Assembly (NCBI RefSeq): GCF_006345805.1
Contig: NC_043012.1
Span: forward strand, 27,528,001 to 27,592,000
Length of the DNA stretch: 64,000 nt
Reading direction: 5' to 3'
Origin: Octopus sinensis
Taxonomy: Eukaryota
Below the pieces are notes generated by a model. The model saw nothing but the letters and a program-made list of their open reading frames with translations. It had not been told where the DNA came from and searched no databases. Of the stretch, positions 3,830 through 58,302 are shown one piece after another (position 1 is the stretch's first letter; each line of letters begins with the position of its first letter). The position numbers and the translations under genes are program-made.

Positions 3830-4265
3830 TTCTTTTATTCTTTTACTTGTCTCAGTTATTTGACTGCAGCCATGCTGGGGCACCACCTTTAGTCGAGCAA
3901 ATCAACCCCAGGACTTATTGTTTGTAAGCCTAGTACTTATCCTATCAGTCTCTTTTGCCAGACTGCTAAGTTACGGGGGGCATAAACACACCAGCATCAG
4001 TTGTCAAGTGATGTTAGGGAGACGAATACAGACACAAACATATACACACACATTATAACCCATGCTAGCATGGAAAGCAGACGTTAAACGATGATGATGA
4101 TGATGATGACTGGCTTCTTACAGTTTGTGGCTACCAAATCCACTCACAGCCTTTGGTCAACCCAAGGCTATAGTAGAAGATACTTGCCCAACATACCATG
4201 CAGTGAGACTGAACCCGGAACCATGTGGTTGGTAAGCAAGCTACTTACCACACAGCCACTCCTGC
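3830..4265 (-). mobile_element. tRNA-derived SINE (minus strand) with an embedded RTE (GAT)n tail fragment
   Basis: Matches the reverse complement of the full SINE at 55179-55583 (tail and tRNA-like head); RTE tail acccatgctagcatgg..(gat)n at ~4057-4110. Confidence 0.75.
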
Positions 4266-6839
4266 TCCTCACATTTTTCATCTTAATAATTTTAATTTTC
4301 AAAATCGAAGTAATAATTATATTGTTACAACACAAAACTCTACAGACAAAAAATCCTACACCATAAAACACTACATTATCATGTGATTATGCAACCTATG
4401 ATCTATTCTTAAGAATGCTCCAACTTAGGATAATTTGGCATTCTTTTGTTTAAAGTATCATATATGGCAAAATGGACAGCTCACACACACACACACATAA
4501 AGCTGATCATGCTTGCATGCATACACATATATATACATACATAGAAAAAAGATATATGTATTTATGTATGTATGTACATATGCAAGATATACGGGTGTAT
4601 GTATGTGTGTGTTTGTGTGGAAGCATGTTCAGCTTTGTGTATGTGTCTGAATGTATGTGCAAGTGTGTTTCACTTATCAACTCATGGCCATATCCCTCAT
4701 AGATTTGAAAGACAAATGCTGGCTTCAACAGGACATGAAAACAAAAGTAAATAAATAAAAATTATTTACAGAAATTGCTGAACAATCAGCTGTCTATTTT
4801 GATGTATAATACTTTAACCAAAAGAATGCTGATAATTTTTATGTACAAGATATAGAATATTGTCTTTTACAAAATAAATATAGCATTAAAAAACAAAGAT
4901 TACAAACTATAAATTACACTAAATGCAGTCTTCTCTGTAAAGACTCTTTCCAAAGGCATTTTAAATTTATTATTCTTATGTTTTTAACTTTCAATTACCT
5001 CGTATATATTCTGTACTTAGATTGCTACTTTCTATGATGTTACTTGGCTTCTTTTAATAACTCACATGAATGGGATTTCTTCTTAGTGACAATTCAAATT
5101 CAAACATTGAGGTTAATGTCTTCTGTGAATATCTTATCTGTGAGACACTGAATGAAAGCCAAATCTGAGTTCATAAATCAGTCAAACCAAAATGCAGTTA
5201 GTTCATTGGTAGTAGCTATTTTGCATATTCTCTACATGAATCTAATTCAATATGTTCATCAAATGAGGTTTCCATATTAAAAGCATTTTCTTACCATAGT
5301 CTTAAAATGAACAGAAATGAGTTCCTTAATCATGCATAAGGGAAGGTTAATGTCATTAGCTTTCACTAGAATTTTAAGCACTTATCAATAATCTTTATAA
5401 GCAAAAACTTTTAAGATATGCCTGCAGATATGTATAATCAACCAAAATAAGTATTTAGTTTTCTATTTCCAACCCATGCCAGCATGGACAACAGACATTA
5501 AATCATGATGATGATGATTTCTATATCAACCAAAATAGGATTTCTTGGAAAAAAATATTTGCACAATTTTATATAATAAATGGAAACAACATTGTTTGCT
5601 ATTTACCACAGTCCAAAATACTGTCTACCCTACAAAGAAATTACTGACCAACCACCTCTTCTCAAAGAATTAAAGAATGAAAAGTCAGCAAATGTATAAC
5701 CAATATACTTAAATCAACTGAGATTTCTCAATGATAAACAATTCCTGAATATTCTGTACTACTTACATAATGTAAATCTATGTTATTCCTTTGCAAATAT
5801 GTAAATCTATGTTATTTCTTTGTCAATAATTTCAATTTCTGACTGATTCGAACTTTGTTACATATGATGCTGATTATATATGATTTTTGTGAAAGATCCA
5901 CATGTTCTTGTATAAAACAATGAGGCAAAAAGTGGGCTTTTATGCATCTAAATTCCTTTCATGGAACAACAATGGAGAATTTTTTTCTTAAGAATAATAT
6001 GTTCAGTAAACATAAGCATTGTTGCAATATCAATCCCATGTATTATTCTTCAAAAATGTTACCAAAAACTCAAATCCTTCAAACAGAGGAAATAACTTTT
6101 CATTTCTTGAGGTTTGTTAGGATTGGGAGTTTTATATTTAAATAAACCATTGTTTCAAACATATACATGCCTAACAAGTTCCATTTAATCTTCCTCTAAT
6201 CAGTCTCTTAAAGTTCGTAATTACTGTGAGTCGTTAAGTGTTTCAAGTTATGACACCATAGCTTATTCAAACCTATCTTGTAGCAGAATCAATTTACAGA
6301 CAAGTGGAAAGCAACATAAAGACAAGGAATTTTAGCAAATATTTAAGGTAAACTCATTTACTTGCTGAAATCTCAGCATCAATAATTTCCAAACTAATCT
6401 GATATAAATCAGATTTTCACAATCACAATTTGACAGTTATAATCACAAGTTGAATGTTACAACAGTCTTCATTTCTGCAACACTACAATATTTCATTCAT
6501 AGTTACAACCCTAATTCCAAACATCTTAAGGTCATAATCACAATTGAACTTCTAAAAAGTTGATTCTTCTAGGATGTAATTGTTTCCATTTCAACAAACA
6601 TTCATGGACTAAGTCATTTTTCAAAAGCAACTATAACTACAAAAGTATATGCATACAAGTATCCCTGCATAATGGTTACCTCAAATTACAGGATTTGGTG
6701 CTTGTGGAAATTGTAAAGTATGATCATTAATTTCAGGATATGGTCTGTTATTTCACCCTTACAAAAATTCGGATGAATTTTAACAAATTCAAACTACATT
6801 TTCTTCTTAGCCAAAATGCACATTTTTAGCTAAGAGCAA

Positions 6840-7718
6840 ACTATTCTTTTATTCTTTTACATGTCTCGGTCAGTTGACTGCAGCCATGAAGGGTTTTAGT
6901 CAAACAAATAGACCTCCAGGTCTTATTTTTTAAAGCCTAGTACTTATTCTATTGGTGTCTTTTGCCGAATCACTGTTTGCAGGGACGTAAACACACCAAC
7001 ACCAGTTGTCAAGCAGTGATGGGGAGACAAACATAGACACACACACACACAAGCTTCTTTCAGTTTCTGTCAACAAAATCCACTTACAAAGCTTTGGTTG
7101 GCCCGAGGCTATAGAAGACATTTGGCTCACAGATTTTTTAAACTAAACAGTTTGAAACTTTGTATACTGGTGTAATTTCTCATGCTAAACATGGCTTACT
7201 TTCAACATTTATGACAAAATTTCATAAGTTATTTTGTGTTAAAGTTGTCATATTTGGGTAATTTTAACCAATCAACTACGTGTAGTCAACTGAAGAAACC
7301 TACTGCAACAACTTCTAGGTTATCTCTACTAAATGTATTTTTCAAACACACCAAATAATCCACACATAGTTGAAAAATATATTTAGTAAAGATGACCCAG
7401 AAGTTGTTGCTCTTTGATTACTATCACAAACAGCAGGTTTCTTCAGCTAAATACATATCGTTGATTGGTTAAAATTACCCAAATACAACACTTCTAAAAT
7501 ACGAAATTTTATCAAAAATGTTGAAAGTAAACCATGTTCAGTGAGAGAAATTACACCAGTATACGAAGTTTCAAACTGTTTAGTTTTAAAAATAATTTTT
7601 TAAATCTGTGAGCCAAACTGAAGAGATCCAACATTTGTCCAAGGTGCCATGCAGTGATACTGAACCCAGAACCATGTGGTTGGGAAGCAAGCTTCTGACC
7701 ACAGTCACACCTGCACCT
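6840..7718 (-). mobile_element. tRNA-derived SINE split by a foldback insertion
   Basis: SINE body at 6840-7120 continues at 7633-7718 (head); same family as 55179-55583. Confidence 0.75.
7121..7617. mobile_element. ~500-bp foldback MITE-like element, almost wholly palindromic
   Basis: Ends tttggctcacagattt / aaatctgtgagccaaa; complementarity continues for >200 bp per arm; non-coding. Confidence 0.8.
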
Positions 7719-8079
7719 CTAGTTGATAATTTTAAGAACTATAATAACAATATACACACATGCATATGGATCACTATAAAGATTTACAGAGTGCATCGGA
7801 ATTTTTCAGTGAATTTTTGTGTGCATGAGTATTTTCTTGTGTTATAATGAGTATCTATCTATATAAATCAACTTTCACCAACACTACTATCTATTATCAA
7901 CTTGAACAACCCCATCAATACCAAGACCAATACAACTACTGCCATTATTAACCCACCAACTCCTTTATGATCTACAACAGCAACAATGAAGATTGACTTC
8001 AGATGAAACAGCAATAATTGACAAGAACAATATGACCACCGACAATACTTCCACCATCACCACCAGCTCTAACAATCCA

Positions 8080-9120
8080 GACAAGGCCATTAGAACAAAG
8101 AAATAAGCCTGGAAGAATGATGGTAGCAGAGAACTAGACCATGTAGCAAGGAAGGAGGCTAGAAGACAAGTTTACTTAGCCTGGGGAAAAGCACAAAGGA
8201 GGAAGTTTGCCAGTGTTCTGTGATGTGAAGACCAAACACTTGAAGTGGTTTAGATTGCAAGAAAGTGTGTCAGAGAATATCGTGATGTGGTAGGAGAGAA
8301 ATGTGTCCACATGGATGATGGCTCACTAGCAGTTAGTGATTCTGCAAAAGAGGCTTGGAAGTGACACTTTGAAAGGTTGCTAAATGTGGAGAATGCATTA
8401 GAGAAAGAGAGCCTGCCTAATGTAGATCCAACAGAGGGGCCAGCAATCCAAATTGACAGTAGCTTAGTATCTACTAAGCTATTAAGGATATAAAGACAGG
8501 GAAAGCTGTCATCCATATAATTAATCAGGTTGTCCGTGAGGAAATCATACGCACTGATTGATGTAGCAAGCATTATGGTCAACTGCTACAAAGATGAGTG
8601 ATGCCTTAGACAGAAATAATTATAGAGGCATCAAATTACTGGACCAGGTGATGAAAGTTGCAGAAAAGGGTCATAGGAAGAAAGTTAGCATAGACAAGAT
8701 AGAGTTTGGATCTGTGCCAGGGAGAAGCACCACCGATGCTATCTTCCAGATCAGACAACTGATGAAGAAATACTTGACCAAAAATAAACCTTTGTATTTA
8801 GCTTTTGTGGACATGGAGAAAGCCCTTGATATGGTCCCCCATTCCCTTATCTGGTGGGTAATGTGGGAGCTAGGGATAGATGAGTGGTTGGTGAGAGCTG
8901 TGCAAGCCATGTACAGGGATGCTGTCAGTAGGGTGAGAGCTGCCAGTGAGTATAGCAAGGAGTTTAGTATACAAGTAGAAATCTACCAGGGATCAGTTCT
9001 TAGCCCCCCCCCCTGTTTATCATAGTCTTCCAAGCTATAACTGAGAAATTTAAGACTAGCTGCCCTTGGGAACTCTTCTATTGCTGAATCACTACCAGAA
9101 CTAAAAAAGAAATTTCAAGT
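8080..9120 (+). mobile_element. RTE-clade LINE RT fragment
   Basis: ORF 8594-9025: NNYRGIKLLDQVMKV, FGSVPGRSTTDAIF, YLAFVDMEKALD, YQGSVLSP. Confidence 0.9.
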
Positions 9121-9124
9121 ATGA

Positions 9125-9405
9125 AAGCACAGACTGTGTGTGTGTGTGTGTATGCGTCTATATATATGTATGTGTATGCATATATGTACATGTGTGTGTA
9201 TATATTTCTGTGTCTGTGCTTGTCCCACCATCATTGCTTGACAACCAATGTTGGTGTGCTTATTATGTGCCCGTTACTTAGCGGTTTGGGAAAAGAGACC
9301 GATAGAGTAAGTACTACCAGAATAAGTCCTGGGTTCAATTTGTTCACCTAAAGGTGGTGCTTCAGTATGGCCACAGTCAAATGACTGAAACAAGTAAAAG
9401 AATAT
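9125..9405 (+). mobile_element. SINE 3' half
   Basis: Ends ggtggtgcttcagtatggccacagtcaaatgactgaaacaagtaaaag, as in the full SINE. Confidence 0.75.
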
Positions 9406-9439
9406 ATATATATATTACCAAAACAAAGCTTGCAACATC

Positions 9440-10720
9440 TACAGTGCGGTCAAACATGACAACAGAGAAAAGTTAAGTAAACTAGATGCCATTCCTTTAA
9501 CTGTTCAGACCTTATTTTTTCATAGATTGAAAACTTTACTGGGTAATAAAGGCCAGTTTGAAAGGTTTAAGAAGCATTTAAATTTACACAACATAATAAT
9601 GACTGGTGAAGCTGCTACAAATTATCCTGAGCAACTGAAAAAAAAATTATTGTTGAAGGGTGATACATTACATATAATGTTGATGAAACTGCGTTTTTCT
9701 AAAAGAGCATGCCTGCAAGACCTTTTATTTCTTAAGAAAAACAAAACTATGATATAAAAGCTTCCAAAAATTGCCTGATTCTTTTGGAAGGAAATGCTGC
9801 CACTAATATGAAATTATTGTCCTTACTCATGTACCACTCCAAAAATCCAACAGCTTTCAAGGAGTACGCAAAGTTTAATCTGATTTCAAATAAGAAGGCA
9901 TCAATGACTAAGAACCTTAAGAGTGGTTTACAAACATTATTTGTCCAACTGTAGAATGATGCAGTGCCAAACATATTTTCAACAAAACATTTGTCCCTTT
10001 AAATAAAATACAAAGCCACCCAATGAACTTCAATAAACTTTCTGATAGCATAAGTGCAGATAACATCCTCAAGAATATTTCTTTTCTCCAGTCAATGAAT
10101 CAAGGTGTGGTTGCTAATTTCAAGGCATATTATCTGAGAACTTTAACTTAAAACCTACAGTTACAGACTTCTGGAAGAAGTTCACCATAAAGGATGCTGT
10201 GGATAATATATTTGAGTCATGTGATAAAGTGAAACCCTCAACTCTGAAAGGTGTTTGGAAAAATATATGGCCAGGATGTCTCTGATTTTACAAGCTTTCC
10301 ATGAACAAAAGATGTCCATCAAATCTGGAAAGATAGTGTGACACACGTAAATGATGCAGAATTTGAAAAAAAGACATAGGTGATAATGTGGTTGATCTAC
10401 TAGTAGCCCAAAGAGAAAGTCTGATGAAAAGCTTGATGCCATTAGAACAGCAAACTGAGAAGAGATTCCACCAACTCCCACTTACATTGACTGCAAAGAA
10501 TATTGCTAAAAGGCTGGTACTTACACAAGGTCAGCAAGTATTTACTGATAATGACTCTATAATCTTGAAAAAATTACAAAGAATTTACAAACTCATTTCC
10601 TACACTAAGTTGTATAAAGAGATGCCATAAACATCAAACAACTTTCGATAAGTTTTCCCTTCAAGTAGATGTTGATGAATTAAAAGATACAAGATACTGC
10701 TCCTCATCCTGCCATCATCA
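9440..10720 (+). mobile_element. Decayed pogo/Tigger DDE transposase
   Basis: FERFKKHLNLHNIIMTGEAA, NVDETAF, LLLEGNAA..MK, MYHSKNPTAFK motifs across frameshifts. Confidence 0.8.
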
Positions 10721-11389
10721 CTCCTCACACAGTAAACGTGTTTTGGTCAGAATGTACTCAAATACCAATTTTATTCCTTAAACGCATCTCTCTTCAAATG
10801 TTTTTATGTATACATAGTATTGTGTATATTTAGAAATTGTTATTTTCATGCAGAAAAGTCGTTGCGATACTTCAGGTTTTTTTGGGGGGAGGGGCACTTT
10901 TTAACATGAAAATCGATGGGGGAAACTTAATTTTCTGTTACGGCAAGAATTTCTGGGACACAATACATCCATAACGCATTTGTGTTTCAACAATATGATT
11001 AACAATCATGAGCTACGAAGAGAATCCCTGTTAGGGAATTAATTTGTGCTTGCATATAAACATTTTCAAGGGATTTGGGGTACCTGAGGTTGATCTTGCT
11101 TTAGCTGATCATGACTAGCTGATGTTCAGAACTTTTACTTTAATTTGAGCGAATGTTTGTGTTGTGTTTATACGCTTAAATTGATCCAGCTAATATATTT
11201 CACGGGTGTACAGGGTCATTTTGTTGGAAATGACGTACTCAATTGATGAAGATGATAAGAAAGTTACCAATATTTTGAAATTATCGACATCACAATACCA
11301 TGAAGCAGTTATCTCTCGTTTACACATAAAATTTCTCATCTTACACCATTATTCCAATCTTTACAACAGGGTTCATTTAGAGAATCTAT

Positions 11390-11630
11390 GTTTATACATT
11401 CCATCCATCTCCTCCACCCACCATTCCTGGAAAGGTCGTGGAGTTGTATCCTCAGGCCTTTCCTCCTCCATAGGGTGCTATCAGAATCAGCCATCATTAT
11501 ACTTTCCGACTGGATTCCCAAGCATGACCAACTGAAACTAGATATTATGCAGCCATCTCATTTTTGGTCTACCCCTATGTCTCCTGCCGGTTGAAGAATC
11601 CAGCGACATTCTAATCACATCTATGTGTAT
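11390..11630 (-). mobile_element. RTE LINE 3' fragment
   Basis: Minus translation RRHRGRPKMRWLHNI and a gatggatgga tail, like 1990-2185. Confidence 0.65.
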
Positions 11631-20065: not shown

Positions 20066-21760
20066 GAATGGGAGAAAGAGAGTCTGCTGAATGTCGACCC
20101 AACAGAGGGAACAGCAATCTGAATTGACACTACCTTGGTAGATAAAGCAATTAAGAGTATGAAGACAGGGAAAGCCCCAGGCCCATCAGGAATCACCACA
20201 GAGATGCTCAAAATATCTAGCGATGTCGGCTATAGCCTAGTCACCCGTATAGTTAACCAGGTGATACATGAAAGAGTCATACCCAATGACTGGTGTAGCA
20301 ACACCATAGTCAACTGCTACGAAGGTAAAGGTGATTATTTGGATACAAATAATTACAGAGGTATCAAGTTGTTGGATCAGGTAATGAAGGTTATGGAGAG
20401 GGTCATAGCCCAACTAATTAGAGAGAGAGTTAGATTAGATGAGATGCAGTTTGGGTTCCTGCCAGGGAAAAGCACCACTGATGCTATATTTCTGGTAAGA
20501 CAGCTGCAGGAGAAATACCTAAACAAAGATAAACCTCTGTACCTGGCTTTCGTTGACATGGAGAAAGCCTTTGACAGGGTCCCCCGATCACTTATCTGGT
20601 GGTCAATGAGGAAACTAGGGATAGATGAAAGTTTAGTGAGAGCTGTGCAAGCCATGTGCAGGGACACTGTCAGTAAGGTGAGGGTTGGCAACAAGTACAG
20701 TGAAGAACTCGGAGTAGAGGTAGGGGTCCACCAAGGTTCAGTCTTCAGTCCCCTCCTATTTACCATAGTCCTCCAGGCAATAACAGAGGAATTCCAGACA
20801 GGATGCCCCTTAGAGCTCCTCTATGCTGATGACCTTGCTCTAATTGCTGAGTCACTATCAGAACTAGAGTTTCAGGTGTGGAAGCAAGGATTAGAATCGA
20901 AGGGCCTTAGAGTCAACCTAGCAAAAACCAAAGTCCTAATAAGTAGGAAGGCAGCCAAACTACAAATCCCTTCAGGTAGATGGCCCTGCTCGATCTGTAG
21001 AAAAGGCGTAGGTAGAAACTCTATAAGATGTACCAAGTGTAAGCTATGGACACATAAGAGGTGCAGCAATGTCAAAGAAAGGCTAACTAGGAAGATAGTT
21101 TTTGTATGTGGCAGATGCTCAGGAGTAATAAACACCGAAAATGTGCAGAGAACAACTTCTGCCACATTCCAGGGAGAAAAACTAGAAGTATTTGATAGCT
21201 TCTGTTACCTAGGTGACCAAGTCAGTAGTGGGGGAAGGGTGCTCTGAAAGTGTAGCTGCTAGAATAAGAATAGCCTGGGCAAAGTTCAGAGAGCTCCTAC
21301 CTCGGCTGGTGACGAAGGGCCTCTCGCTCAGAGGAAAGGGTAGACTGTATGACGCATGTGTATGAACAGCCATGCTACATGGCAGTGAAACATGGGCCAT
21401 GACTGCTGAGGACATGCATAAGCTTGCAAGGAATGAAGCCAGTATGCTCTGCTGGATGTGTAATGTCAGTGTGCATACTCGACAGAATGTAAATGCCTTG
21501 AGAGAAAAGTTGAACCTAAGAAGCATTAGATGTGGTGTGCAAGAGAGATGACTGCACTGGTATGGTCATGTGGTGAGAATGGATGAGGATAGCTGTGTGA
21601 AAAAGTCTCACACCCCACCAGTTGAGGGAACCTGAGTAGAAACTCTGCCAGATCAGATTGGAGCCTGGTGCAGCCATCCAGCTTGCCAGTACTCAGTCAA
21701 ACTGTTCAACCCATGCCAACATGGAAAGCGGGCATTAAACAATAATGATGATGATGATGA
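20066..21760 (+). mobile_element. RTE LINE, 5'-truncated; 370-aa RT ORF with a PHD-like finger; (GAT)n tail
   Basis: ORF 20135-21247: GKAPGPSGI, FVDMEKAFDRV, QGSVFSPLLF, LYADD, then C-x2-C..C-x2-C-x4-H-x2-C..C-x2-C. Confidence 0.95.
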
Positions 21761-31383: not shown

Positions 31384-31427
31384 CCACTACAATTGTTTCA
31401 TGTCTGCTACCGACATTCTTCAGGTGG
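31384..31427 (-). ncRNA. Intact minimal type I hammerhead ribozyme motif (44 nt)
   Basis: CCAC-CTGAAGA-ATGTC GGTAGCA GACAT-GAAA-C AATT G-TA-GTGG: all core bases, three stems, palindromic ACAATTGT. Confidence 0.85.
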
Positions 31428-31689: not shown

Positions 31690-31738
31690 GTTCTTAACGC
31701 TGTTTCCGGGATATTTTATATATCCCTTCATCAGAAAC
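31690..31738 (-). ncRNA. Degenerate hammerhead motif
   Basis: GTTT-CTGATGA-A GGGATAT ATAAA ATATCCC G-GAAA-CAGCGTTA-AGAAC; stem III imperfect. Confidence 0.5.
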
Positions 31739-31888: not shown

Positions 31889-32077
31889 AAGGGTGGATGC
31901 TACTGTAGCTTGTATCCCCAGGAGGACACCTCCTCCAGCTGGCTATTGACACACTATCTGTGCCGTATCAGTATTTGCAAAGGGAAGCCATCCTTCCCAT
32001 CTCCAACCTGGCATGATACACATGGACTCGAGTTTCTGATGAAGGTATTGACCCATCATCAATGTGTGACAATCACC
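31889..32077 (-). repeat. Hammerhead-bearing repeat R, copy 1 (directly after the Tx1 ORF2 3' end)
   Basis: Reverse complement of 35243-35430 and 37348-37535; degenerate hammerhead at 32019-32068 with palindrome ACTCGAGT. Confidence 0.85.
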
Positions 32078-35000
32078 AGTTTTTTATTATGATAAAAATT
32101 ATCATACATAGAAGGGACAGCACGGGACACTACAAACATTTAAAGGAATCGCTCAGCGAGTTATAAATAATCATTTTTTAAAAATGTATTTATATATTAT
32201 AAAAGTTAATTTGGTTTTGTCCAACTTTTAGCTTGTTGTCCAGTGACTACACCTTACTTTTACCATTGGAGGGATTAAGAAGGGACATTCATTCCCAACT
32301 TCCTTGCCACATCCGTTCATCTTTTCTCATACACGCTTCTTGACAGGTACCTCCTCTCCAGCTCTATCTTGCTTTTCATGTGATACTTGAAGTATTGTAG
32401 CATTCCAGTGCCAGAGATGAATGTTCCTGTCTTGATCCCTTGCATTCTAGTTCTCCATGCACACTCATTACCGCGACTGTACATAGAAAACAAGCCTCAC
32501 CTCCTTTGGATAATCCGATGGGTGGTACACTTTTAATCACAGACTCAGCTGATAGCTGTACTCTTCCTAGATGTGACAGTACGTGTTCTATGTAAATTGT
32601 CAACTCCGAAAGTTGAGCACACTGTACAAGAGCATGCAGGATAGTTTCCTTATCCTGCCTGCACTTTGGACATTCTGCTGGCACTGACAATCTATGCCTA
32701 GACAATTTCTTGTGAACAGGTAACACATTCCTAAAACACTGCCAGGTCAGGGATCTTTGGTAGTTATCCAAATACCCTGCCCTGAAAGTGTTCTGAAACA
32801 GTTTAGATAGCTGGTTCTCATCAAGCTCCAGAGTCTCTCCTAGCATGTCGTCACATTTGTACTCTTCCAAACCTTTATAAAATGTAGAGGTGGTATTTCC
32901 ACTGCCAGATTTACCCGCCTTGTGGATTAGCACAAGTGCCTGCTGACATTCCTTTTGCTATTCAGTCGTGTTTTGTCTTTTAATCAAACTGGGTGTAAAT
33001 TCCTCCAAGGATGCTGGTCGTGGAAAGAATTCCTCTGTGAGCGAATTCTACACCAGACCACCAGCCAGTAAAGCCAGGGATGCCTTAGTCTCAGTGCATG
33101 TTGGCACATCAGCCACCACGGCATCCCTAGGCCACCCTTTAACGGCTCTTGACAGCACACAGAGCACCTCACAAGTGGTTTCCCCTCCACAAAAAGCAAA
33201 AGAGAATTCGCACCAGCTTGCATAGCCATGAATCGGGGAAAGCCATGACGGTCAGACGGTAGGTGATATCAGACGCAATAGACATCTGCACCACCTCTGC
33301 CCTCCCTTTCAGGCACAGCACTCTTTTGGACCAGGTCCAATTTGTGCTTCTACCCTGTCCATCACCTCACTCCAATTCTTCTCCATCTGGGAGTCCAGAC
33401 CAAACCAAACTCCAAGCAACTTAACAGAACCATCTGTCCAGTGCCCTACCACACTGGACGTAATTGGCTTGCTGCTCCAGGTGTCGAGCCACAAACTGAT
33501 GGACTTGTCCTTGTTAACTTTTGTTCCTGCTACCGCCTCGTATCTTCTGATTGTCTCCACTACACGAGGTAGCTGGGTCATCTGCATATGCAGAGACACT
33601 CTTATCACATCCAATTTCATTAGGGGTGCTTCCTAAATTTTCCAACTTTTGCAGTAATAGCTCGAGAGTCAGCATATACAGAAGCAAAGACTGGGAGCAT
33701 CCCTGATGAACTGAACGTTTTACCTTGTACAGTTCTGACAGGTAACCGTTCAATTGAACTGTGGATTTGATGCCACTATAAATGGCCTTGATCCAACCGC
33801 AGAAATCAGGGCCTAGCCCAGCCAACTCAAGGATTGCTTCCAGGTACCGATGATCAACCCTATCGTAAGCTTTACTTTGGTCTAGATGAACCAGAGCCCC
33901 ACCTTTACCGGATACTTTACCCACCCTGTCTAAGGTGTAGTGTAAGAAATGATGATTGTCCTGGATTGACCTGCTAGGAATGGCACATGTTTGCGCCTTC
34001 CCTACAAGTTTCTCAATGACACGTGTCAACCTTTTTGCTAACACCTTAACCAAAATCTTTAACTCTACATTCAGTGGAGTTATGGGCCTGAAGTTACTAA
34101 TATGATCCCCCTTGCTTGGGTCTTTTCTGACTAGCGTCACTACTCCCTGACACACAGAGCTGGGAATTCCCCCATTCTGTTGCCAGTTTGTGTATGTGCA
34201 AGCCAGCAAGTGTCCAAACAAGTCCGGCATACTACTGTCAAACTCGTAGGGTAGACCCTCCAATCCCGGAGACTTGTCCCGGGTGCATTCGGCTCTTCAC
34301 AACACCTTGCCTCCAGTGCCGAGAGTCACGGTCCATCAGCCAGGAATTCCCTTAAGGGCTCCCCATGGTCCAACACCTCGCTCATCCCAAACAGCTGGGC
34401 AAAATGCTGGTGAAATGCCTTCTGCATCTCCTCCTGTCCTTTGATCGTATGTCCCTGTTCGTCTATTAAAGACTGTACAGAGACTTCTCTGCCTCTCCTA
34501 CTCTCCACACAATGGGCCCATCCAGCAACGTTAATGCCTTCTCTACCCACTGCGCGTACCTTAGCCCTGACTCTACACCCTTCATGTTTGGCTTTGAGAT
34601 GACAGTGTAATACCACTCTCACTGCCAATACTCTGGATGCAGAGCCAGATGCCATGGCCTCCTCTATTTCCTTAATTAGCTGCCCTTCTATTCTAATCTT
34701 CTCTAAACTTAGCTCTCTACTAAATCTAAGAGAGTATGAATGAATGGCTCGCTTGAGGGTGCACCACTATCTATTATTAACGATGGCTCCGCATAATGCC
34801 CTCTGAACTAACTCCTTAACCGGGGTACAGAAGACTTTACCAGTCAAAATAGACTTGTTCATCTTCCAGTATCCTGGTCCCTGTCTACGGCACTTAACTA
34901 GGTGTACCTTGCACGTCACTAATTTGTGATCCATGTTGGAGGTACAGTAAAAGTGTGGACAACTAACTGTGTGTATATCTCTATCTCTTATGACTATCCT

Positions 35001-35149
35001 ATCTAAGTAAGACCTGTGTGAACCGTCGTTATTAGACCACGCCTACTGTGGAATGAGCGGTTCATCCAGTCTGTACCGATCTACTAGTTAATAGCTTGCT
35101 AGTAGTCTTTTTAGGCCAGGACTTCCCTTCCTATTGATTGAGCCCACAC
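32078..35149 (-). mobile_element. L1/Tx1-clade LINE ORF2, 5'-truncated within EN and decayed; 3' UTR with AATAAA
   Basis: SYLDR..DHK..GPGYWKMNKSIL (EN), NFRPITPLN, LDQSKAYDRVDH, SVHQGC, SAYADD (RT), CPKC..ETILHALVQC (CCHC); stop at ~32275. Confidence 0.9.
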
Positions 35150-35611
35150 TATCCTTAAGGTTAGATTCTACTGTAGCTTGTAGCCCCTGGAGGACACCTC
35201 TTCCAGCTGGCTATTGGCACACTATCTGTGCCCTATCAGTATTGTCACACGCTGATGACGGGTCAATACCATCATCAGAAACTCAAGTCCGTGTGTATCA
35301 TGTCAGGTTGGAGATGGGATGGATGGCTTCTTTTTGCAAATACTGATAGGGCACAGATAGTGTGTCAATAGCCAGCTGGAGGAGGTGTCCTCCTGGGGCT
35401 ACAAGCTACAGTAGCATCCACCCTTAAGGGTTAGCCACAATTAAGTGGCAAATATACTTCACAAAGTCGTGCAGCTACTGTTTATACCTCGATCAAGATT
35501 TATTATTGCTTGTTTACACTTTTTTGTGATCAGTGACTTTTCGTCATTGGAAAAAGGATATATGTATTTGCATTGGGATAGCACTTGACATCGACTATTG
35601 GTGATTGTCAC
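35150..35611. repeat. Repeat R: inverted partial (35150-35242) + full ~360-bp unit with hammerhead at 35246-35295
   Basis: Hairpin arms 35150-35242 / 35339-35430; CACACG-CTGATGA..GAAA-C TCAA G-TC-CGTGTG; unit ends at a new GGTGATTGTCAC (35600-35611). Confidence 0.85.
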
Positions 35612-37347
35612 TCCTCTGTGTTTTTTAGAAAGTGAGGCTGACTCAATGTGAAGCCGCCATGTTGGGTGGAATGAAGAAAGCAGATGAAATGAAGATGTAT
35701 GCAGAGGCTGCGGAAATGCGGGACGCCAAGAATGCATGTGGACTGAAGGAGGAACAAATGGAATGAGATGTAAAGAAATTGAAAAACTACAGCAGTATGG
35801 TGGAAGTTGAAGAAACACAAGTAAGACTAGTCATGCCTGAAGAAGTGATGAAGAAAATTGAGAAGAGAACTGTAATTTTTCGAACGAAAATAGAAGAGCG
35901 GAAAGAGCTCCAGAGGAAATAGAAAAACTAATTATGAGCAGCATTGAAGAGAAATAATCTTCCTCAATAGAGGAAATGAATACAAGACAGTGGCAGCCAT
36001 ATTCAAAAATGAAGGAGATGCAGTGACAAATTGTAAACATGTGATAGAAGGGAAGAAGTAGTTGCTATTGCCTAGCAGTCCAGGGAAGACATTGATAAAA
36101 ATTAGAGTGGGAAGAGTACCTCCAATGACAGAACCGGAGTGGGTAATGGTGGCCATTTTTGGCTTGAAGCAGCAAAAAGGAAGCCTAGAATTGGAGATTC
36201 AGCTAGTAAGCAGAACTGTATGCCAGAATTTCTTGGGGTACGGCATTGAAATAATCAAAGCCGTAACCCCAGAATATTACAAGGAAGTGCCCAAAGCGAT
36301 AGAGATGCTGATGGGAGTGAGAGTGGATATAATACTTACGGGAAGACTAGCCAGATGTTATAGGTGCAGCCTAAGGGGGCACAAAAAACAAAAATTGTGG
36401 TAAATCAGCTGAGGAGATAGCAAGAGAAATACATGAAGAAATAATGGAAGAACAAAGGAAAAGAGAACTGGCAGAAAAAGAAAAACTAGAAGAGACAAAA
36501 AGCAGAAAGCGTGAAAGAAAGAAGTCACCAACAATAGCAGAAATAAAAAGGAGCAAGGGTATGGAAGAAGAAATGCAACAAGAAACAGAAAACGTAGAAG
36601 AACCAATAACAGAGATATCAGAAGGGGAGGTGGAAGTACAAACGATGAGGAAATCGCGCAAAAGAGCCAAGAGGTGTATAACAGAAGGAAGGTGAGGAAT
36701 TGCAGTCGGATGGAGATGCAGACAAGCAAGTATGTGAAAAAATACAGACAATCAAATTACAGTGGAGAGGAGAACTAGAACAACAAGGAAATAGAATATG
36801 AAAGAAACACCGAGGAAAACAGAAACATGGAGAAAAACATAGAGATAGGATGATAAACTATGGAAATATTACAACTGGAAAAAAAAAGAATGTGAACATT
36901 GTAAAATATGTTAAACAAAAAGAAAATAATGGAAAAAGAACTGATGAATGGACAAGTAATTAAAAGTTGTAGAAAACAAAAGAAAAAATATTTAATTTTC
37001 GGTTGTAAAAGGACATATATGAACGGTTAAATTAAAGAAAAAAAATGAAAGGAAAGGTCACAGTTTCGCATTGTAGCAAAACTAGATGTAGTTTTAAAGT
37101 TAATTGTAAAGTCTAATTGTTAAGTTAATTGTAAAGTTTCATTGTATGTTTAATCGTAAAATCTAATTGTAAAGTTTATTGTGAACGTTTTCACGGTTCA
37201 TCTTGCAGCGTGGACGAGGTGGCCGTCTCATTTGCATCATATCATTTCATTTCATTTAGCATTTTTCGTCCGTCTTTATGTTCCTTCATGTCTGTTGTAT
37301 ATCACTTCTATATAATCAGGCCTTGTGCCTATAATAAAGAGATAACC
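35612..37347 (+). mobile_element. ORF1-only LINE-like module (gag-like zinc knuckle + charged tail), decayed
   Basis: GCCGCCATG start at 35659; CYRCSLRGHKKQ(N)C knuckle with a 1-nt frameshift; Glu/Lys-rich C-terminus; AATAAA near 37333; flanked by GGTGATTGTCAC at 35600-35611 and 37348-37359; no EN or RT seen. Confidence 0.7.
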
Positions 37348-37560
37348 GGTGATTGTCACATGCTGATGACGGGTCAATACCCAGAAACTCAAGTCCATGT
37401 GTATCATGTCAGGTTGGAGATGGGAAGGATGGCTTCCCATTGCAAATAATGATTGGGAACAGATAGTGTGTCAATAGCCAGCTGGAGGAGGTGTCCTCCT
37501 AGGGCTACAAGCTACAGTAGTGTCCACCCTTAAGAGTTAGCCACATTTAAGTAGCAAATA
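37348..37560 (+). repeat. Repeat R, copy 3, with hammerhead at 37357-37401
   Basis: CACATG-CTGATGA-C GGGT CAAT ACCC A-GAAA-C TCAA G-TC-CATGTG; truncated by (TA)n. Confidence 0.85.
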
Positions 37561-37659: not shown

Positions 37660-39986
37660 AAACTTGTCAATTTTAACCTTAAAACCTATAGAAATCCTCC
37701 GTCCAACCCAGCTCTTGCTAAGTTTGAACAGGACCTGATGAACTTAATTAAGCGGTTGAAATTTTCAAAATACACCAATCCCTTCCAGAAGCTGCTATCT
37801 CAGAAGATATCGTCCATGAAATCATCTCCTGACCTACACGTATTGTCTGATAAAACCGGAAATATTTTCTCTGTACCACCAAATTTGTATAACGACTTGA
37901 TATTGAAGGAGTTAAACTCTGGCTATAAACATGCAAATAAAAATGCTATAAATAAGATTAATGCAAATCATCTGGAAATAATCTCTGGTTTGGGCCTGCT
38001 TGATAGAACCCAACCCATGCTTTATTGAAGGACCATAAATCTGATTTTATATCTAATCCTTCGATTAGATTGATATGTCCGACAAAGTCTGATTTGGGCA
38101 GAATCAGCAAGTTTATTATCGATAGTATTATCCCAATTGTGAGGGAAAAGTCCAACTTCCCTTATGGAAAGGAACTGAGGATGTGATACTTTGGTTTGAC
38201 TCTCTCAAAGATAAACCTAAGCTTAATTTCATACAATTCGACATTTCGAATTATTATAACTCTATAAGCCCTATCTTGTTAAACAAAGCCTTAATCTTTG
38301 CAAGAAGGTTTGTAGAGATACCTAAATCGGATATAGGGGTAAATTTGGCAGCAAGAGAAACACTTATCTCCTATAACGAGAGTGACTAGCAGAGAGCCGA
38401 CTCAAATAATTATTTTGATATAACCATGGGGGTCATCAGATTCTGCACAGGTGACTGACCTACTTGGCCTATTTCTACTCTCTGAAATTAAGAAAAGCTT
38501 CCCTCATCTTACTGGCAGATTGTATAGGGATGATGCCCTTTTTGCCGTGCTGGGCCTCTCGAAGACGGAATTAAACAGATTAAAGAAGTCGCTGAGAAGC
38601 TTCTTGAGGGACTTTTTTAATCTTGACATCATCTTCGACATTAATTCTAGGGTGGTAAACTTTTTGGATGCTACCTTGTGTCTAAATACCAGTCTCTATT
38701 ATCCCTTTCGTAAGCCTAATAAATCAATATCATATATCAATGTATCATCCAATCATCCAAAATCCACAATAGACAGCATCGTTACGGCAATTTCAACTAG
38801 AATATCTAACTTATCTGTGAATGAAAAGATTTTTGAACAGCATGCACCGGTGTATAATAATGCCCTAAGATTAAGTGGTTTCAAATCTAAAATATTTTAT
38901 ATCCTTAATACTAGACTCAAAAACAAAATGGCTGGTTTGCCATTTAAGCACGTCACAAATACTATGAATAAATGCAGGGAACCCCCCAACTGCAATAATA
39001 GGAAGCCCTTGGGTAGTAATTTGTTTAGGGATACTCGCAATAGGTACAGTTATAAGAAAGTTAATAATTTTGACAAGGAGTTAAACAAAACAGGAGGTTC
39101 ACGGTCTAGAATAAGGGAAGTTGTTTGGTTCGCTCCCCCTTTCTCCCTTAGAGTAAGGAACTTACCAAAAATATTTTTTAGAATTCTGAAGGAGAACTTC
39201 CCAAAGAATCATAAATACTATAACATTTGCAACAAATCAGTGATCAAGTTCTCTTACTCTGTAATGCCTAACTTTGCTTCGATTATTGCATCAATCAATA
39301 CAAGCAAGCTTGCTGGGCGGAATAGCTGGAAAAGTTCTTTTGTGGATGACCAAGGAACTGCGTATAATAATTTTGTAATGCCTAATGCCAATGATACAAA
39401 CAGTCTGCCTTTACCGGATCTATCGAACCCATGTAATAAGGGAAGATTTGATGGAACGAAAGAGGGAAACTTGTTTAGAACTGGAGACACAAAATGTAAT
39501 GGTAACAATAGAAATAAAACTAGGAAAGGCCCCGGAAAGAAATGTAATTGTTGAAGCCCCGATTTATGCCCTTTAGATGGTTCCTGTCTAGTTACTAACA
39601 TTATATATAAATGTGTAGTCAAGGATGAGGATAGGTTAAATAAATTTTATATAGGTAGCACAGTAGATTTTAAGGCTAGATATAGATCACATATGAGCTC
39701 ATTTTCTATCGATAAATACTGTAATTCTACAACACTTGCATCCCATATACACAATTTAAAGAAAAATAATAAGAATTATTATCTAGAATGGTCCATTATC
39801 TCTAAAACCCCAAATTTCAAGGGAAATATTAACAGGTGTAAGCTGTGCATAAGGGAATCCCTTACCATCCTTAGGTGTTATGGACCGCACATTTTGAATA
39901 AATTTACTGATGTGATTCCCTTTTGCATCCATAAATTTTCTAAATTTTTAAAAGTGTATAGAAATAAAATAAGTCGTAGAAAATAA
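37660..39986 (+). mobile_element. Penelope-like element (RT + GIY-YIG), near full length, few lesions
   Basis: QFDISNYYNSI, DITMG..SAQVTDLLG, LYRDD; CNC*SPDLCPLDGSCL..IIY..FYIG..FKARYRSH..CKLCIRE. Confidence 0.93.
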
Positions 39987-40198
39987 ATAGCTTAGCTCTT
40001 ATAGGGTTTGAAACCACGGAGGTTCAATTTAATTTAATTTAATACACCCATTTTTTTTTTTTTACTGCTTTATATAAAATAAATTTTTTTACTGCTTTAA
40101 TTCTTTCTTCTGGGCTCATCTGAGTATGACTGCTTCAATAAGAAAACACACAATATTGTGTTAAGCCTGCTACGCGATGATGTCTGTCTCTCCATTTT

Positions 40199-40733: not shown

Positions 40734-41245
<512 letters not shown>

Positions 41246-41374: not shown

Positions 41375-41525
41375 TATACGCACACATACACACACGGCAG
41401 TAACTTCTGCCTGCCGAATTCAATCACAAAGCTTCGGTCGACTCGGGGCTATAGTGGAAGATACCTACCCAAAGTGCCACGCAGTGCGACTGAACCCGAA
41501 ACTATGTAGCTAGGAAGCAAGCTCC
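41375..41525 (-). mobile_element. SINE head fragment
   Basis: Reverse complement of the tRNA-like SINE head (gggttcagtcgcactgcgtggcac). Confidence 0.7.
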
Positions 41526-41569
41526 CTTACCACACAGCCATGTCCGCATATATATATCACCTTCTGGCT

Positions 41570-42871
41570 GAATAACTACTCCTTTGAACTCCCAACTCGC
41601 ATAAACAAAGATCTTATAATAGAAGGACTTAGATTTATTTTAGAAAACAATTACTTTATTTTTGACAATAATTTCTACAGACAAAGATCGGGAACAGCGA
41701 TGGGCACGCGTACTGCGCCTTCTTTTGCCAACCTAGTGATGGGATACCTCGAGAAAAATACTCTACCAGATAACACTCGAGAAATATGGAAACACTTCTC
41801 CAGAACAACTGGAAAAGATACCTCGACGACTTTTATCATCTGGGATAAAAGTATAGAGAAACTTGAGGAATTTAAAATACTATTAAATGGAATAAATGAT
41901 AATATACAATCACGAAGGATCATAACGAAGAAGAATTACCATTTTTAGACATCCTCATTAAGAAAACCGGCAACAAAATAGAGACAGATATCTATTATAA
42001 ACCGACAGACTCCAAACAGTACCTACCCTTTGATTCATGCCACCCACGACACACTAGAATAAATGTCCCTTTTTGTCTAGCTAGAAGGATTTGCACCATA
42101 ATATCAGACACCAACACCCGACACACACGTCTCCAGGAACTTAGAACCACACTCACAAATAGAAACTATCCAGAGCCCCTAATAGACAGCGCAATCCAAC
42201 GGGCACTTAAATTAAGTATAGAAGACCTGAGACAAACAAAACCAAAAAAGAAAGAACAATTAAAAAACCCTTCCCTACATCTCTACAGACAACCCACTTA
42301 ACAATGAGGCCTTCAGCACCATACTACAAAGCACAGCCCTACTAAAGGGAAACCCAAAGATGAACCGGATCCTCGAAACACACACCATCATTAAAAGTAA
42401 ACGGCAAACCAAAAATCCTTGAAAAGGATTTTAACCCAAGCTAAACTGCACTCAACATCAACCACAAAACCAGCAGTTAGAAAATGTGGAAGGCCCAACT
42501 GAGGAATCTGTGTCATCTTGGTAGAAGGTTCAGATCAGTTCACCATTAAAACAAACTTCACCTGTGCATCAGAAAACTTAATTTACGTCTTAACATGTGC
42601 AGGCTGCAATAGGCAATATATAGGCCATACAAAAAATAGCTTACGTAACAGGATGGCGGTGCATAAATCACAAATTAGAAACCTTGAATACCGGAAAATA
42701 CCGGTAAGCGGACACATAGATAGATGTGCTGCAAATGAAAATCCGAAATTTACAACTTACCCACTTTACAAATTCAGTGACAACGTAACCTTCACGCAAC
42801 ACCAAAATAAAGAACTTTATTTCATCAAAAATTTTAGACCAAGTTTGAACACCCTGGGCCAGGAATATTAA
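41570..42871 (+). mobile_element. Penelope-like element, Neptune-like C-terminus, decayed
   Basis: GTAMGTRTAPSFANLVMG, RYLDD, FLDILI, CHPRH; FTCASENLIYVLTCAGCNRQYIGHT..LRNRMAVH..HIDRC. Clade label is from motif recognition only. Confidence 0.88.
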
Positions 42872-43105: not shown

Positions 43106-43413
43106 CAGATCTGATTTTGATTAGTCAAAAAATTGATGATGTTTTACCTCAGTGGTCAAGCTTGTTGCCATGCTTGATTGGTTTTCTTACAAGATACAGT
43201 TATGGGTCAGGTCTGATTCTGATTCGTTAAAAAATTGATGACATTTTTCTTCCGTGGTCAAACTAGCCGTTCTGCAAGGTTAGCCACCTAACAGGATACA
43301 ATTATGGGTCAGATCTGATTTTGATTCACTAAAAAATTGATGACGTTTTTCTTCCATGGTCAAACTTGTCGTTTTGCTTGGCTGGTTTCCTAAACAGGAT
43401 ACAGTTGGGGGTC
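43106..43413 (+). repeat. Three tandem 102-bp units with conserved ends and variable middles
   Basis: TGATGA at 43134, 43236 and 43338; CTGA at 43111, 43213 and 43315. Confidence 0.85.
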
Positions 43414-43825: not shown

Positions 43826-43868
43826 TTTTTGATAAGGTTCGTTATTTCAAGAACCGAAACATGTAAAA
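43826..43868 (+). ncRNA. Degenerate hammerhead motif downstream of the Neptune-like PLE
   Basis: TTT-TTGATAA-GGTTC..GAACC-GAAA-C AT G-TA-AAA; two core substitutions. Confidence 0.5.
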
Positions 43869-58230: not shown

Positions 58231-58302
58231 GGTCTCATGGTGTAATGGTTAGCTTTCTGGACTTTGAATCCAGCGATCCGAGTTCAAATCTCGGTGAGAC
58301 CT
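58231..58302 (+). tRNA. trnQ-TTG: tRNA-Gln (anticodon TTG), gene or retroposed copy
   Basis: 72-nt cloverleaf; acceptor GGTCTCA/TGAGACC, anticodon stem CTGGA/TCCAG, T arm GTTCAAATC; D stem weakened (U11-U24, G10-U25); TTTT at 58307-58310. Confidence 0.85.

Follow-up and report, generated by a model that had tools for sequence, protein, structure and literature searches.

Probable repeated insertion of a LINE lineage and its ORF1-only derivative next to a predicted hammerhead in an Octopus repeat

A 64-kb stretch of Octopus sinensis contig NC_043012.1 (the window, with positions counted from its first nucleotide) carries two modules of long interspersed nuclear element (LINE) type on opposite strands, one with the second open reading frame (ORF2) of a LINE and the other with ORF1 only. 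At its 3' end each module runs straight into a copy of the same AT-rich, non-coding repeat of ~365 nt, here called R, and a first-pass annotation had proposed that both ends adjoin one 12-mer, GGTGATTGTCAC, with a hammerhead core starting 3 nt further on. How, then, did two modules come to stop at the same place in a ribozyme-like repeat? We think it probable that a LINE lineage and its ORF1-only derivative have repeatedly inserted 5' of the hammerhead in pre-existing R copies, and that the window holds one old R insertion that was hit twice.

The exact positions and both junctions were reproduced (Table 1). The 12-mer has three exact sites in the window and no others at ≤1 mismatch, against a chance expectation of 0.28, and three occurrences were reached in none of 100 shuffles. 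With the slash marking the junction, the minus-strand LINE module ends ...ATAATAAAAAACT/GGTGATTGTCAC (32078/32077) and the ORF1 module ends ...ATAATAAAGAGATAACC/GGTGATTGTCAC (37347/37348); 3 nt past the 12-mer the core CTGATGA begins (TTGATGA in the minus copy), followed by GAAAC-N4-GTC. The remaining 12-mer directly precedes the first base of the ORF1 module, which is the layout of a 12/12 target-site duplication (TSD), and it closes an R unit of ~365 nt, as had been suggested for a unit of ~360 bp. The R copies R_A, R_B and R_C are mutually 92–93% alike (94% over 185 nt for R_A versus R_B), and a partial copy, R_B', meets R_B head-to-head with 3 nt of microhomology (35241–35243). The 3' half of R_B (35426–35599) is homologous to R flanks in O. 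vulgaris.

Other loci were reached by an exhaustive HMMER search with an ORF1 fragment, which gave 28 relatives, followed by retrieval of the genomic loci of annotated ORF1 proteins. All named full-fragment, single-stretch relatives that were looked up belong to O. vulgaris, O. bimaculoides or O. sinensis; one named match of the multi-stretch, repeat type is a Hexamita inflata protein. Three word-indexed protein searches returned no useful relatives. Four further ORF1-only copies of O. vulgaris (L009, L010, L011 and L013), on four different chromosome records of one other assembly, adjoin diverged R. L009 holds an ORF1-only homologue with an intact 379-amino-acid ORF (P0010) that ends ...ATAATAAAGAGAAA; its TSD is TGCTGGGTTCG (11/11) and its junction is placed 22 nt before the core. 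Directly downstream of the element stands a diverged hammerhead of R, gctactctaca-TTGATAA-...-GAAAC-ta-GTC. At L011 the TSD is AGCAAGCCA(T/G)GCTACTCCAG (19/20), the junction lies 21 nt from the core, and the sequence downstream, A-CUGAUGA-UGAG-CAAGA-CUCA-GAAAC-UA-GUC-UCUGGG, reads as a clean minimal hammerhead; the element is preceded by the 3' part of R, and beyond this comes an inverted R copy. The L013 junction, ...GAGAAA/CGGATACGCTACCCTGAA-CTGATGA, is 17–18 nt from the core, and at L010 the 5' junction falls at the aligned top-strand position, the 3' junction having been lost by deletion. An empty R site, which the first-pass annotation had asked for, was found once: in an unoccupied copy at L011 (8385–8150, minus strand) the 3' part of R continues uninterrupted into the 20-mer and the hammerhead.

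Counted back from the core, the 3' junctions lie at 15 nt (twice, in the window), 17–18, 21 and 22 nt, every one of them in sense orientation, and this small sample comprises six 3' junctions at 15–22 nt, three of them with distinct TSDs, and one empty site. The TSDs match within a locus and differ in sequence and length between loci, and GGTGATTGTCAC is confined to one R subfamily. The earlier proposal of a LINE family that targets R at a single 12-mer therefore holds for recurrent insertion just 5' of the hammerhead, but the junction is a zone of 15–22 nt rather than one exact site. Had the flanks proved diverse, the locus was to be regarded as a one-off rearrangement or a chance juxtaposition confined to the window. 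Its inverted junction and its LINE without a TSD are signs of rearrangement, but the association recurs at four loci on four chromosome records of another assembly, and five junctions, all facing the same way in the ~365-nt unit, fall in a span of 8 nt; we give such an accident hardly any credence.

The direction of the event could also be the reverse, with R as an incomer that preferentially inserts just after the AATAAA tails of these LINEs. R is mobile, has a Penelope-like layout at several loci and always starts only a few bases from the LINE tail, as that would predict; on the other hand, it is the LINE-type element, and not R, that the duplications enclose, in the window, L009, L010 and L011 the 3' part of R extends on the upstream side of the element, and an R copy without any LINE exists. 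No R copies with their own TSDs were seen inside uninterrupted LINE tails, and we regard this direction of insertion as very unlikely.

The mobility of R has a known counterpart in Penelope-like elements, which show a pseudo-long terminal repeat (pseudo-LTR) arrangement with a partial tandem and an inverted, 5'-truncated copy, together with a bias towards (TA)n (PMC8557442). R shares the partial tandem, the adjacent inverted 5'-truncated copy and the (TA)n insertion bias: junctions of an inverted with a direct R copy occur in the window (35241–35243), L010 (~9600), L011 (~5225) and L013 (~4930), and (TA)n borders the R complexes in the window (on the right side), L009, L010, L011 and L013. The R unit is circularly permuted, its 3' part running into the hammerhead in the empty copy, with no more than ~1.3 units per locus. 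Exact-pattern scans for R gave no match in metagenome, prokaryote-genome and viral collections, and a search with concatenated peptides read from R, aimed at spurious ORFs on other R copies, gave no match either. Elsewhere in the window (41121–41180), 62 nt are 81% identical to R positions 163–223 (GCTACAGTA...GGTTAGCCA..TTAAG..TGGC) and lie within a repeat of another kind, ~370 bp long and flanked by microsatellites; R may have a part in common with a further repeat family.

Element and R could in principle have travelled together, and their similarities were therefore compared between loci. The element bodies of L011 and L013 are 81–90% alike and their R flanks 78%; those of L011 and L010 are 60–68% alike and their R flanks 86%; those of the window and L009 are 75% alike, with the upstream R at background. 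This incongruence and the locus-specific TSDs speak for repeated, independent insertion into R copies that were already there. A composite in which R is part of the element, as its 3' tail or pseudo-LTR, and both move jointly through R's machinery or by LINE 3' transduction, so that their recurrent adjacency would stem from common descent, is accordingly improbable in our judgement. It would account for the presence of R downstream of every ORF1-only copy examined, for a layout resembling the Penelope pseudo-LTR arrangements (PMC8557442), and for L013, where the 3' part of the element and R form an inverted 5'-truncated copy head-to-head with a direct full copy, the two being 92% alike and the whole complex (4193–7055) lying inside (TA)n with no R upstream of the direct copy. 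Against it stand, besides the incongruent similarities, the TSDs of differing sequence and length around the element alone at three loci, the R copy with an uninterrupted site, and the wholly different junction-proximal R of L011 and L013 despite the closeness of their elements. Element and R may nevertheless sometimes be copied together by a Penelope-type route, as L013 hints.

For repeated insertion into R, the window would have arisen in three steps. R would first have inserted once in a Penelope-like manner within an AT microsatellite, leaving an inverted arm (R_A to R_B') and a direct arm (R_B to R_C) as at L011; a 5'-truncated LINE copy would have entered the inverted arm, without a TSD and with loss of ~170 bp of R at its 5' junction; and the ORF1-only derivative would have entered the equivalent site in the direct arm, with its 12-bp TSD. 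Twin priming was considered as a cause of the inverted layout and rejected, as both arms carry a 3' tail and R of their own. At each insertion the LINE endonuclease may nick the bottom strand 15–22 nt upstream of the hammerhead core, reverse transcription may be primed at the conserved tail of ...AATAAA plus 5–9 nt, and a top-strand cut 11–20 nt further on, beside the core, would create the duplication and leave the hammerhead intact just downstream. The cutting is presumably done by the LINE's own ORF2 protein, which could recognise the hammerhead block, the sole sequence conserved near all sites.

Homology rather than the endonuclease could also do the targeting, if the R extension of a read-through transcript, possibly ending at the hammerhead cut, annealed to nicked R elsewhere. 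In its favour, 48–55 nt separate the 3' ends from the predicted cut, helix I takes its 5' strand from the TSD region, an element-plus-R read-through product is present as DNA in L013, and co-transcription with the target sharpens the targeting of R2 and R1 (PMC4494074). Junctions inherited through RNA would, however, predict the same junction-proximal R in closely related elements, which L011 and L013 do not have, and every element carries its own AATAAA 5–9 nt before its end; we hold such RNA-guided recapture to be about as doubtful as the composite. Somewhat less remote, if still unlikely, is that the LINE lineage both recognises and exploits the hammerhead, with read-through RNA trimmed 48–55 nt past the element and element-plus-R RNA moved by R's Penelope-type machinery. 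LINE, ORF1-only derivative and ribozyme-bearing retrozyme would in that case form a three-way partnership with two alternative routes of spread. That the hammerhead serves to make LINE RNA ends is, at present, speculation.

Several observations weigh against repeated insertion of the LINE lineage into R, the paired element-plus-R copies of L013 being one. The sample is small and biased, with five ORF1-only copies and one ORF2 junction reached through annotated proteins. A single junction between an ORF2-bearing LINE and R was observed, the one in the window. That LINE has no TSD; its 5' end is joined to R position ~197, which implies the loss of R noted above. The nearest full-length relatives found (L015 and L012) are not located in R, and no R lies near the distant ORF1 relatives L014 and L016. 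Finally, the bottom-strand nick sites differ (CC/AATAG, CT/AGTTG and CA/GGCGT, with the slash at the nick) and show no simple recognition sequence.

The structure of the hammerhead was examined across R copies. In R_C, helix I (CACAUG/CAUGUG) is extended by UGAU/AUCA, helix II is GGGU/ACCC, and helix III has a 2-bp stem with a 4-nt loop; the cleavage triplet is GUC. The predicted cut follows C37395, so that the earlier figure of ~36 nt beyond the 3' end is right when counted from the 12-mer (36 nt) and becomes 48 nt when counted from the module end. R_A and R_B have a 5-nt insert in helix II which allows CUGAUGA to pair with UCAUCAG in an alternative hairpin; this longer helix was considered as the ancestral form and rejected, the short form being present in L013, L011 and L010 and the insert thus derived. 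The R_A hammerhead is probably dead, with C3 changed to U (TTGATGA, 32062→32056), two helix I mismatches and a 5-nt helix II bulge, and its helix III loop TCGA makes ACUCGAGU palindromic. The type I core (CUGANGA...GAAA...UH, in order and spacing) is intact in R_C, R_B, L011 (7208) and L010 (9584, minus strand); single core mutations are present in R_A, L009, the empty copy of L011 and L013. A simple type I descriptor had three matches in the window against 0.17 expected, namely R_C and two minus-strand motifs (31734 and 31423) that are unrelated to R.

All six helix I pairs vary between R subfamilies, with two to four pair types each, and 43 of 48 helix I cells are paired in eight distinct copies, a figure matched in 0 of 5000 partner shuffles. 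The versions seen are CACAUG/CAUGUG, UCCAGA/UCUGGG, CCUGAA/UUCAGG and UCUACA/UUUAGA; in helix II the middle pair switches from G-C to A-U, and helix III is invariant (AC/GU). These counts come from a hand-parsed alignment, as MAFFT had aligned helix III wrongly from one subfamily to another. The loops of helix III (UCGA, UA and AUGCAU) are palindromes, as is characteristic of the minimal hammerheads that act as dimers in Penelope-like elements and amphibian retrozymes (PMC7229834), and with a helix III of 2 bp the R hammerhead is predicted to be active as a dimer. From the covariation across Octopus relatives and the palindromic helix III loops, R is therefore, as far as sequence comparison can tell, a real but non-canonical family of type I hammerheads. 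At gathering and E-value thresholds Rfam found no hammerhead in the window, in a 6.3-kb slice of it or in a 91-nt slice (E ≤ 10), and for L011, the cleanest relative, its sole match was RAGATH-1-hammerhead, whose 14.2 bits fall below the gathering score of 56.3. This silence is probably due to position 10.1/11.1, which is C.A or U-A in R in place of G-C. R adds to cephalopod genomes an apparently unannotated hammerhead family that Rfam misses.

The two motifs unrelated to R lie just beyond R_A. That at 31388–31423 (minus strand) is near-canonical (CCAC-CUGAAGA-AUGUC..GACAU-GAAAC-AAUU-GUA/GUGG) with a palindromic helix III, whereas that at 31696–31734 (minus strand) prefers a long hairpin (z = -4.2) and may be no ribozyme. 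L010 has an inverted pair (5943, minus strand, and 6038, plus strand) of another R-unrelated hammerhead-like motif, CTGATGA-tttcatttgaat-GAAAC-agttctaGTC.

No Pfam family matched the window ORF1, and no BLAST alignment was obtained between the ORF1 and ORF2 modules. Over its whole length the 1.7-kb ORF1-only element is 70–77% identical in nucleotides to the L009 element, and its protein matches the ORF1 of L015 at 30% identity (E = 1e-24). The two 3' ends had been called non-homologous; once aligned with relatives, the last 50–70 nt of both modules share a conserved tail, TGTCCC-YTCTATG ... GGCCNTTGTG ... (T)AATAAA plus 5–9 nt. The earlier identification of the ORF1-only module as a LINE-type element was thus borne out, since its ORF1 is homologous to that of full-length LINEs with an apurinic/apyrimidinic endonuclease (APE), reverse transcriptase (RT) and zf-RVT, and since the 3' tail is shared. 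With an ORF1 and tail homologous to those of an autonomous LINE, no ORF2, and TSDs bounding the 1.7-kb elements, it is, to judge by these features, a HAL1-like, ORF1-only, non-autonomous derivative of the group to which the window LINE belongs, and the two stand to each other as autonomous LINE and passenger classically do. A bipartite LINE whose ORF1 and ORF2 travel in separate ribozyme-bounded cassettes, as also suggested, does not fit: a sense hammerhead occurs only downstream of the element in L009, L011 and L013, and ORF1 and ORF2 are kept together in the full-length relatives L012 and L015.

The window LINE itself has the features of an APE-type LINE of the L1/Tx1 group, namely an APE tail, RVT_1 and zf-RVT in the window and a separate ORF1 in L015. 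Among solved structures its ORF2 is nearest to human L1 ORF2p (1e-19), with R2 behind (2e-13). The coding module was also considered as a Penelope-like element with R as its pseudo-LTR, which is ruled out by RVT_1 with zf-RVT, the APE tail and the lack of GIY-YIG. Full-length LINEs at L015 (O. sinensis CM016867.1) match it with nhmmer E = 0 and encode a 383-amino-acid ORF1, Exo_endo_phos, RVT_1 and zf-RVT. With the ORF2 C-terminus and RT as queries, protein searches found nothing but short Logan contigs, of 41–70% identity and without R at their 3' ends. The target-specific behaviour of the LINE is consistent with the Tx1 clade, for which it is not diagnostic.

Relatives of the window LINE have site preferences of their own. 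At L015 (1151–10300) they stand head to tail, their 3' ends (..AATAAAATCA or ..AATAAAGAAATCAT) being followed by ACTGAATACTCGTCAT-like sequence and the leader of the next copy, which points to a lineage that may target sequence at or near its own 5' end. LINEs with 54–58% amino acid identity to the window ORF2 lie at L012 (O. sinensis, 5720–11390) and L013 (O. vulgaris, 1417–2330), each bounded by (ATT)n, on both sides in the former, and seem to be microsatellite-specific LINEs belonging to this group.

LINEs of the Tx1 clade and their non-autonomous partners target other transposons, satellites, small nuclear RNA and 5S genes, and microsatellites (Kojima, 2015, PMC4494074, citing Christensen, 2000 and Kojima & Fujiwara, 2004); examples are Tx1L in Tx1D of Xenopus and the Tx1-Mar LINEs, with the short interspersed element (SINE) family SINEU, in Mariner-N4_AMi of crocodilians (PMC4494074). 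The octopus case resembles these in that one target, within a different repeat family, serves both an APE-type LINE and its non-autonomous partner, with TSDs of 11–20 bp, a fixed orientation, and relatives that target microsatellites or form tandem arrays. It differs in that the target is a hammerhead-bearing Penelope-like repeat, the partner codes for ORF1 and is not a SINE, and the junction varies by ~7 nt between target subfamilies; the LINE is likened to them by behaviour, not by clade placement.

For R, the comparison set was the metazoan non-LTR retrozymes and the hammerhead pseudo-LTRs of Penelope-like elements (PMC7229834; PMC8557442; bioRxiv 10.64898/2026.07.22.740005), the former being head-to-tail tandem repeats of 170–400 nt, each with a type I hammerhead, that give linear and circular RNA. 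R has in common with this set its length, AT-richness, lack of coding capacity and minimal type I hammerhead of the dimer type, with a 2-bp helix III and palindromic loop, as well as its occurrence as partial tandem and inverted 5'-truncated copies inserted into (TA)n. Unlike them it is known from DNA alone, showed neither a long tandem array nor a linked RT/GIY-YIG ORF at the loci seen, departs at position 10.1/11.1 from the G-C pair, and goes unscored by Rfam models.

The octopus LINE, like R2, is site-specific and stands beside a predicted self-cleaving ribozyme in a repeat. In R2 an element-encoded ribozyme similar to that of hepatitis delta virus frees the element's 5' end after co-transcription with the target; in the octopus it is the target that carries the ribozyme, on the 3' side of the element. 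HAL1 (half-L1) elements are reportedly mammalian non-autonomous derivatives of L1 that retain only ORF1. The octopus element has likewise retained its parent LINE group's 5' leader, ORF1 and 3' tail and is without ORF2; it differs from HAL1 in LINE lineage and host, in being site-specific, and in an ORF1 of the CCHC-knuckle type rather than Transposase_22.

In the literature searched we found no paper linking hammerheads with Tx1/LINE targeting or with octopus, nor a hammerhead-bearing Penelope-like repeat as a LINE target; we take the octopus case to be a site-specific LINE of a known kind, accompanied by a HAL1-like partner, on a new target. If confirmed genome-wide, it would offer a natural system in which an APE-type LINE recognises a fast-evolving target whose sole constant part is a ribozyme, a test of whether the ribozyme of a host repeat can act as a 3'-end processor for a LINE, and, with an ORF1 that is intact, an equivalent of HAL1 in an invertebrate.

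Table 1. Features at and around the two modules, in window coordinates
Feature	Position	Strand	Remarks
GGTGATTGTCAC	32066–32077	-	First 12 nt of R_A; most of the 5' strand of hammerhead helix I; abuts LINE 3' end
GGTGATTGTCAC, 5' copy of 12-bp TSD	35600–35611	+	Last 12 nt of R_B
GGTGATTGTCAC, 3' copy of 12-bp TSD	37348–37359	+	First 12 nt of R_C
R_A	32077→31889	-	R positions 1 to ~191, straight after LINE 3' end; then T8 and unrelated DNA
R_B', partial	35243→35157	-	R positions ~126–197; upstream of LINE in LINE orientation
R_B	35241–35611	+	One complete R unit, ~365 nt, ending in the 12-mer
R_C	37348–~37563	+	R positions 1 to ~220, then (AT)n microsatellite
Predicted hammerhead of R_C	37348–37412	+	Best preserved in the window; core 37363–37369, GAAAC 37384–37388
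Hammerhead-like motif of R_B	CTGATGA 35252–35258, GAAAC 35278–35282, GTC 35287–35289	+	
ORF1-only LINE derivative, 1736 bp	35612–37347	+	12-mer on either side
47-nt leader, ATG	35659	+	ORF1-only element
ORF1 CCHC knuckle	~36350–36400	+	Decayed ORF with E/K-rich tail
3' untranslated region (UTR), 25-nt repeats	37100–37185	+	
ORF1-only conserved tail, ...GGCCTTGTGCCTATAATAAAGAGATAACC	AATAAA 37333–37338	+	
APE-type LINE ORF2 module	32078–35156	-	5'-truncated, decayed; many frameshifts and stops
Endonuclease, last ~70 codons	~35100–34770	-	In LINE module
RVT_1	33514–34263	-	Pfam E = 4.6e-19
zf-RVT, CX2CX8HX4C	32376–32933	-	Pfam E = 1.2e-7
LINE 3' UTR, ~300 nt, end ATAATAAAAAACT	AATAAA 32088–32083	-	

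Beyond R_C and its microsatellite, an RT-like coding region follows directly (37680–40000, plus strand; FDISNYYNSI and LYRDDAL, with a 367-amino-acid ORF at 38451–39554), for which Pfam gave no match. The remnant of a Penelope-like element lies at ~41560–42871 (plus strand), with an RT fragment (41700–41948) and a GIY-YIG ORF (42518–42871; Pfam 1.4e-6), and has no similarity to R. Downstream of it a 102-bp unit is repeated three times in tandem (43106–43411; 71–74% alike), and ~950 nt past the remnant a degenerate hammerhead-like motif, TTGATAA...GAAAC-AU-GUA, lies at 43829 (plus strand). The window also contains a tRNA-like sequence (58231–58302, plus strand; Rfam tRNA, 60.6 bits) and copies of SINE-like repeats, several ending in (GAT)n (e.g. 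4057–4252, 7635–7703, 21708–21760 and 41465–41533), and is very rich in (AT)n/(AC)n microsatellites.

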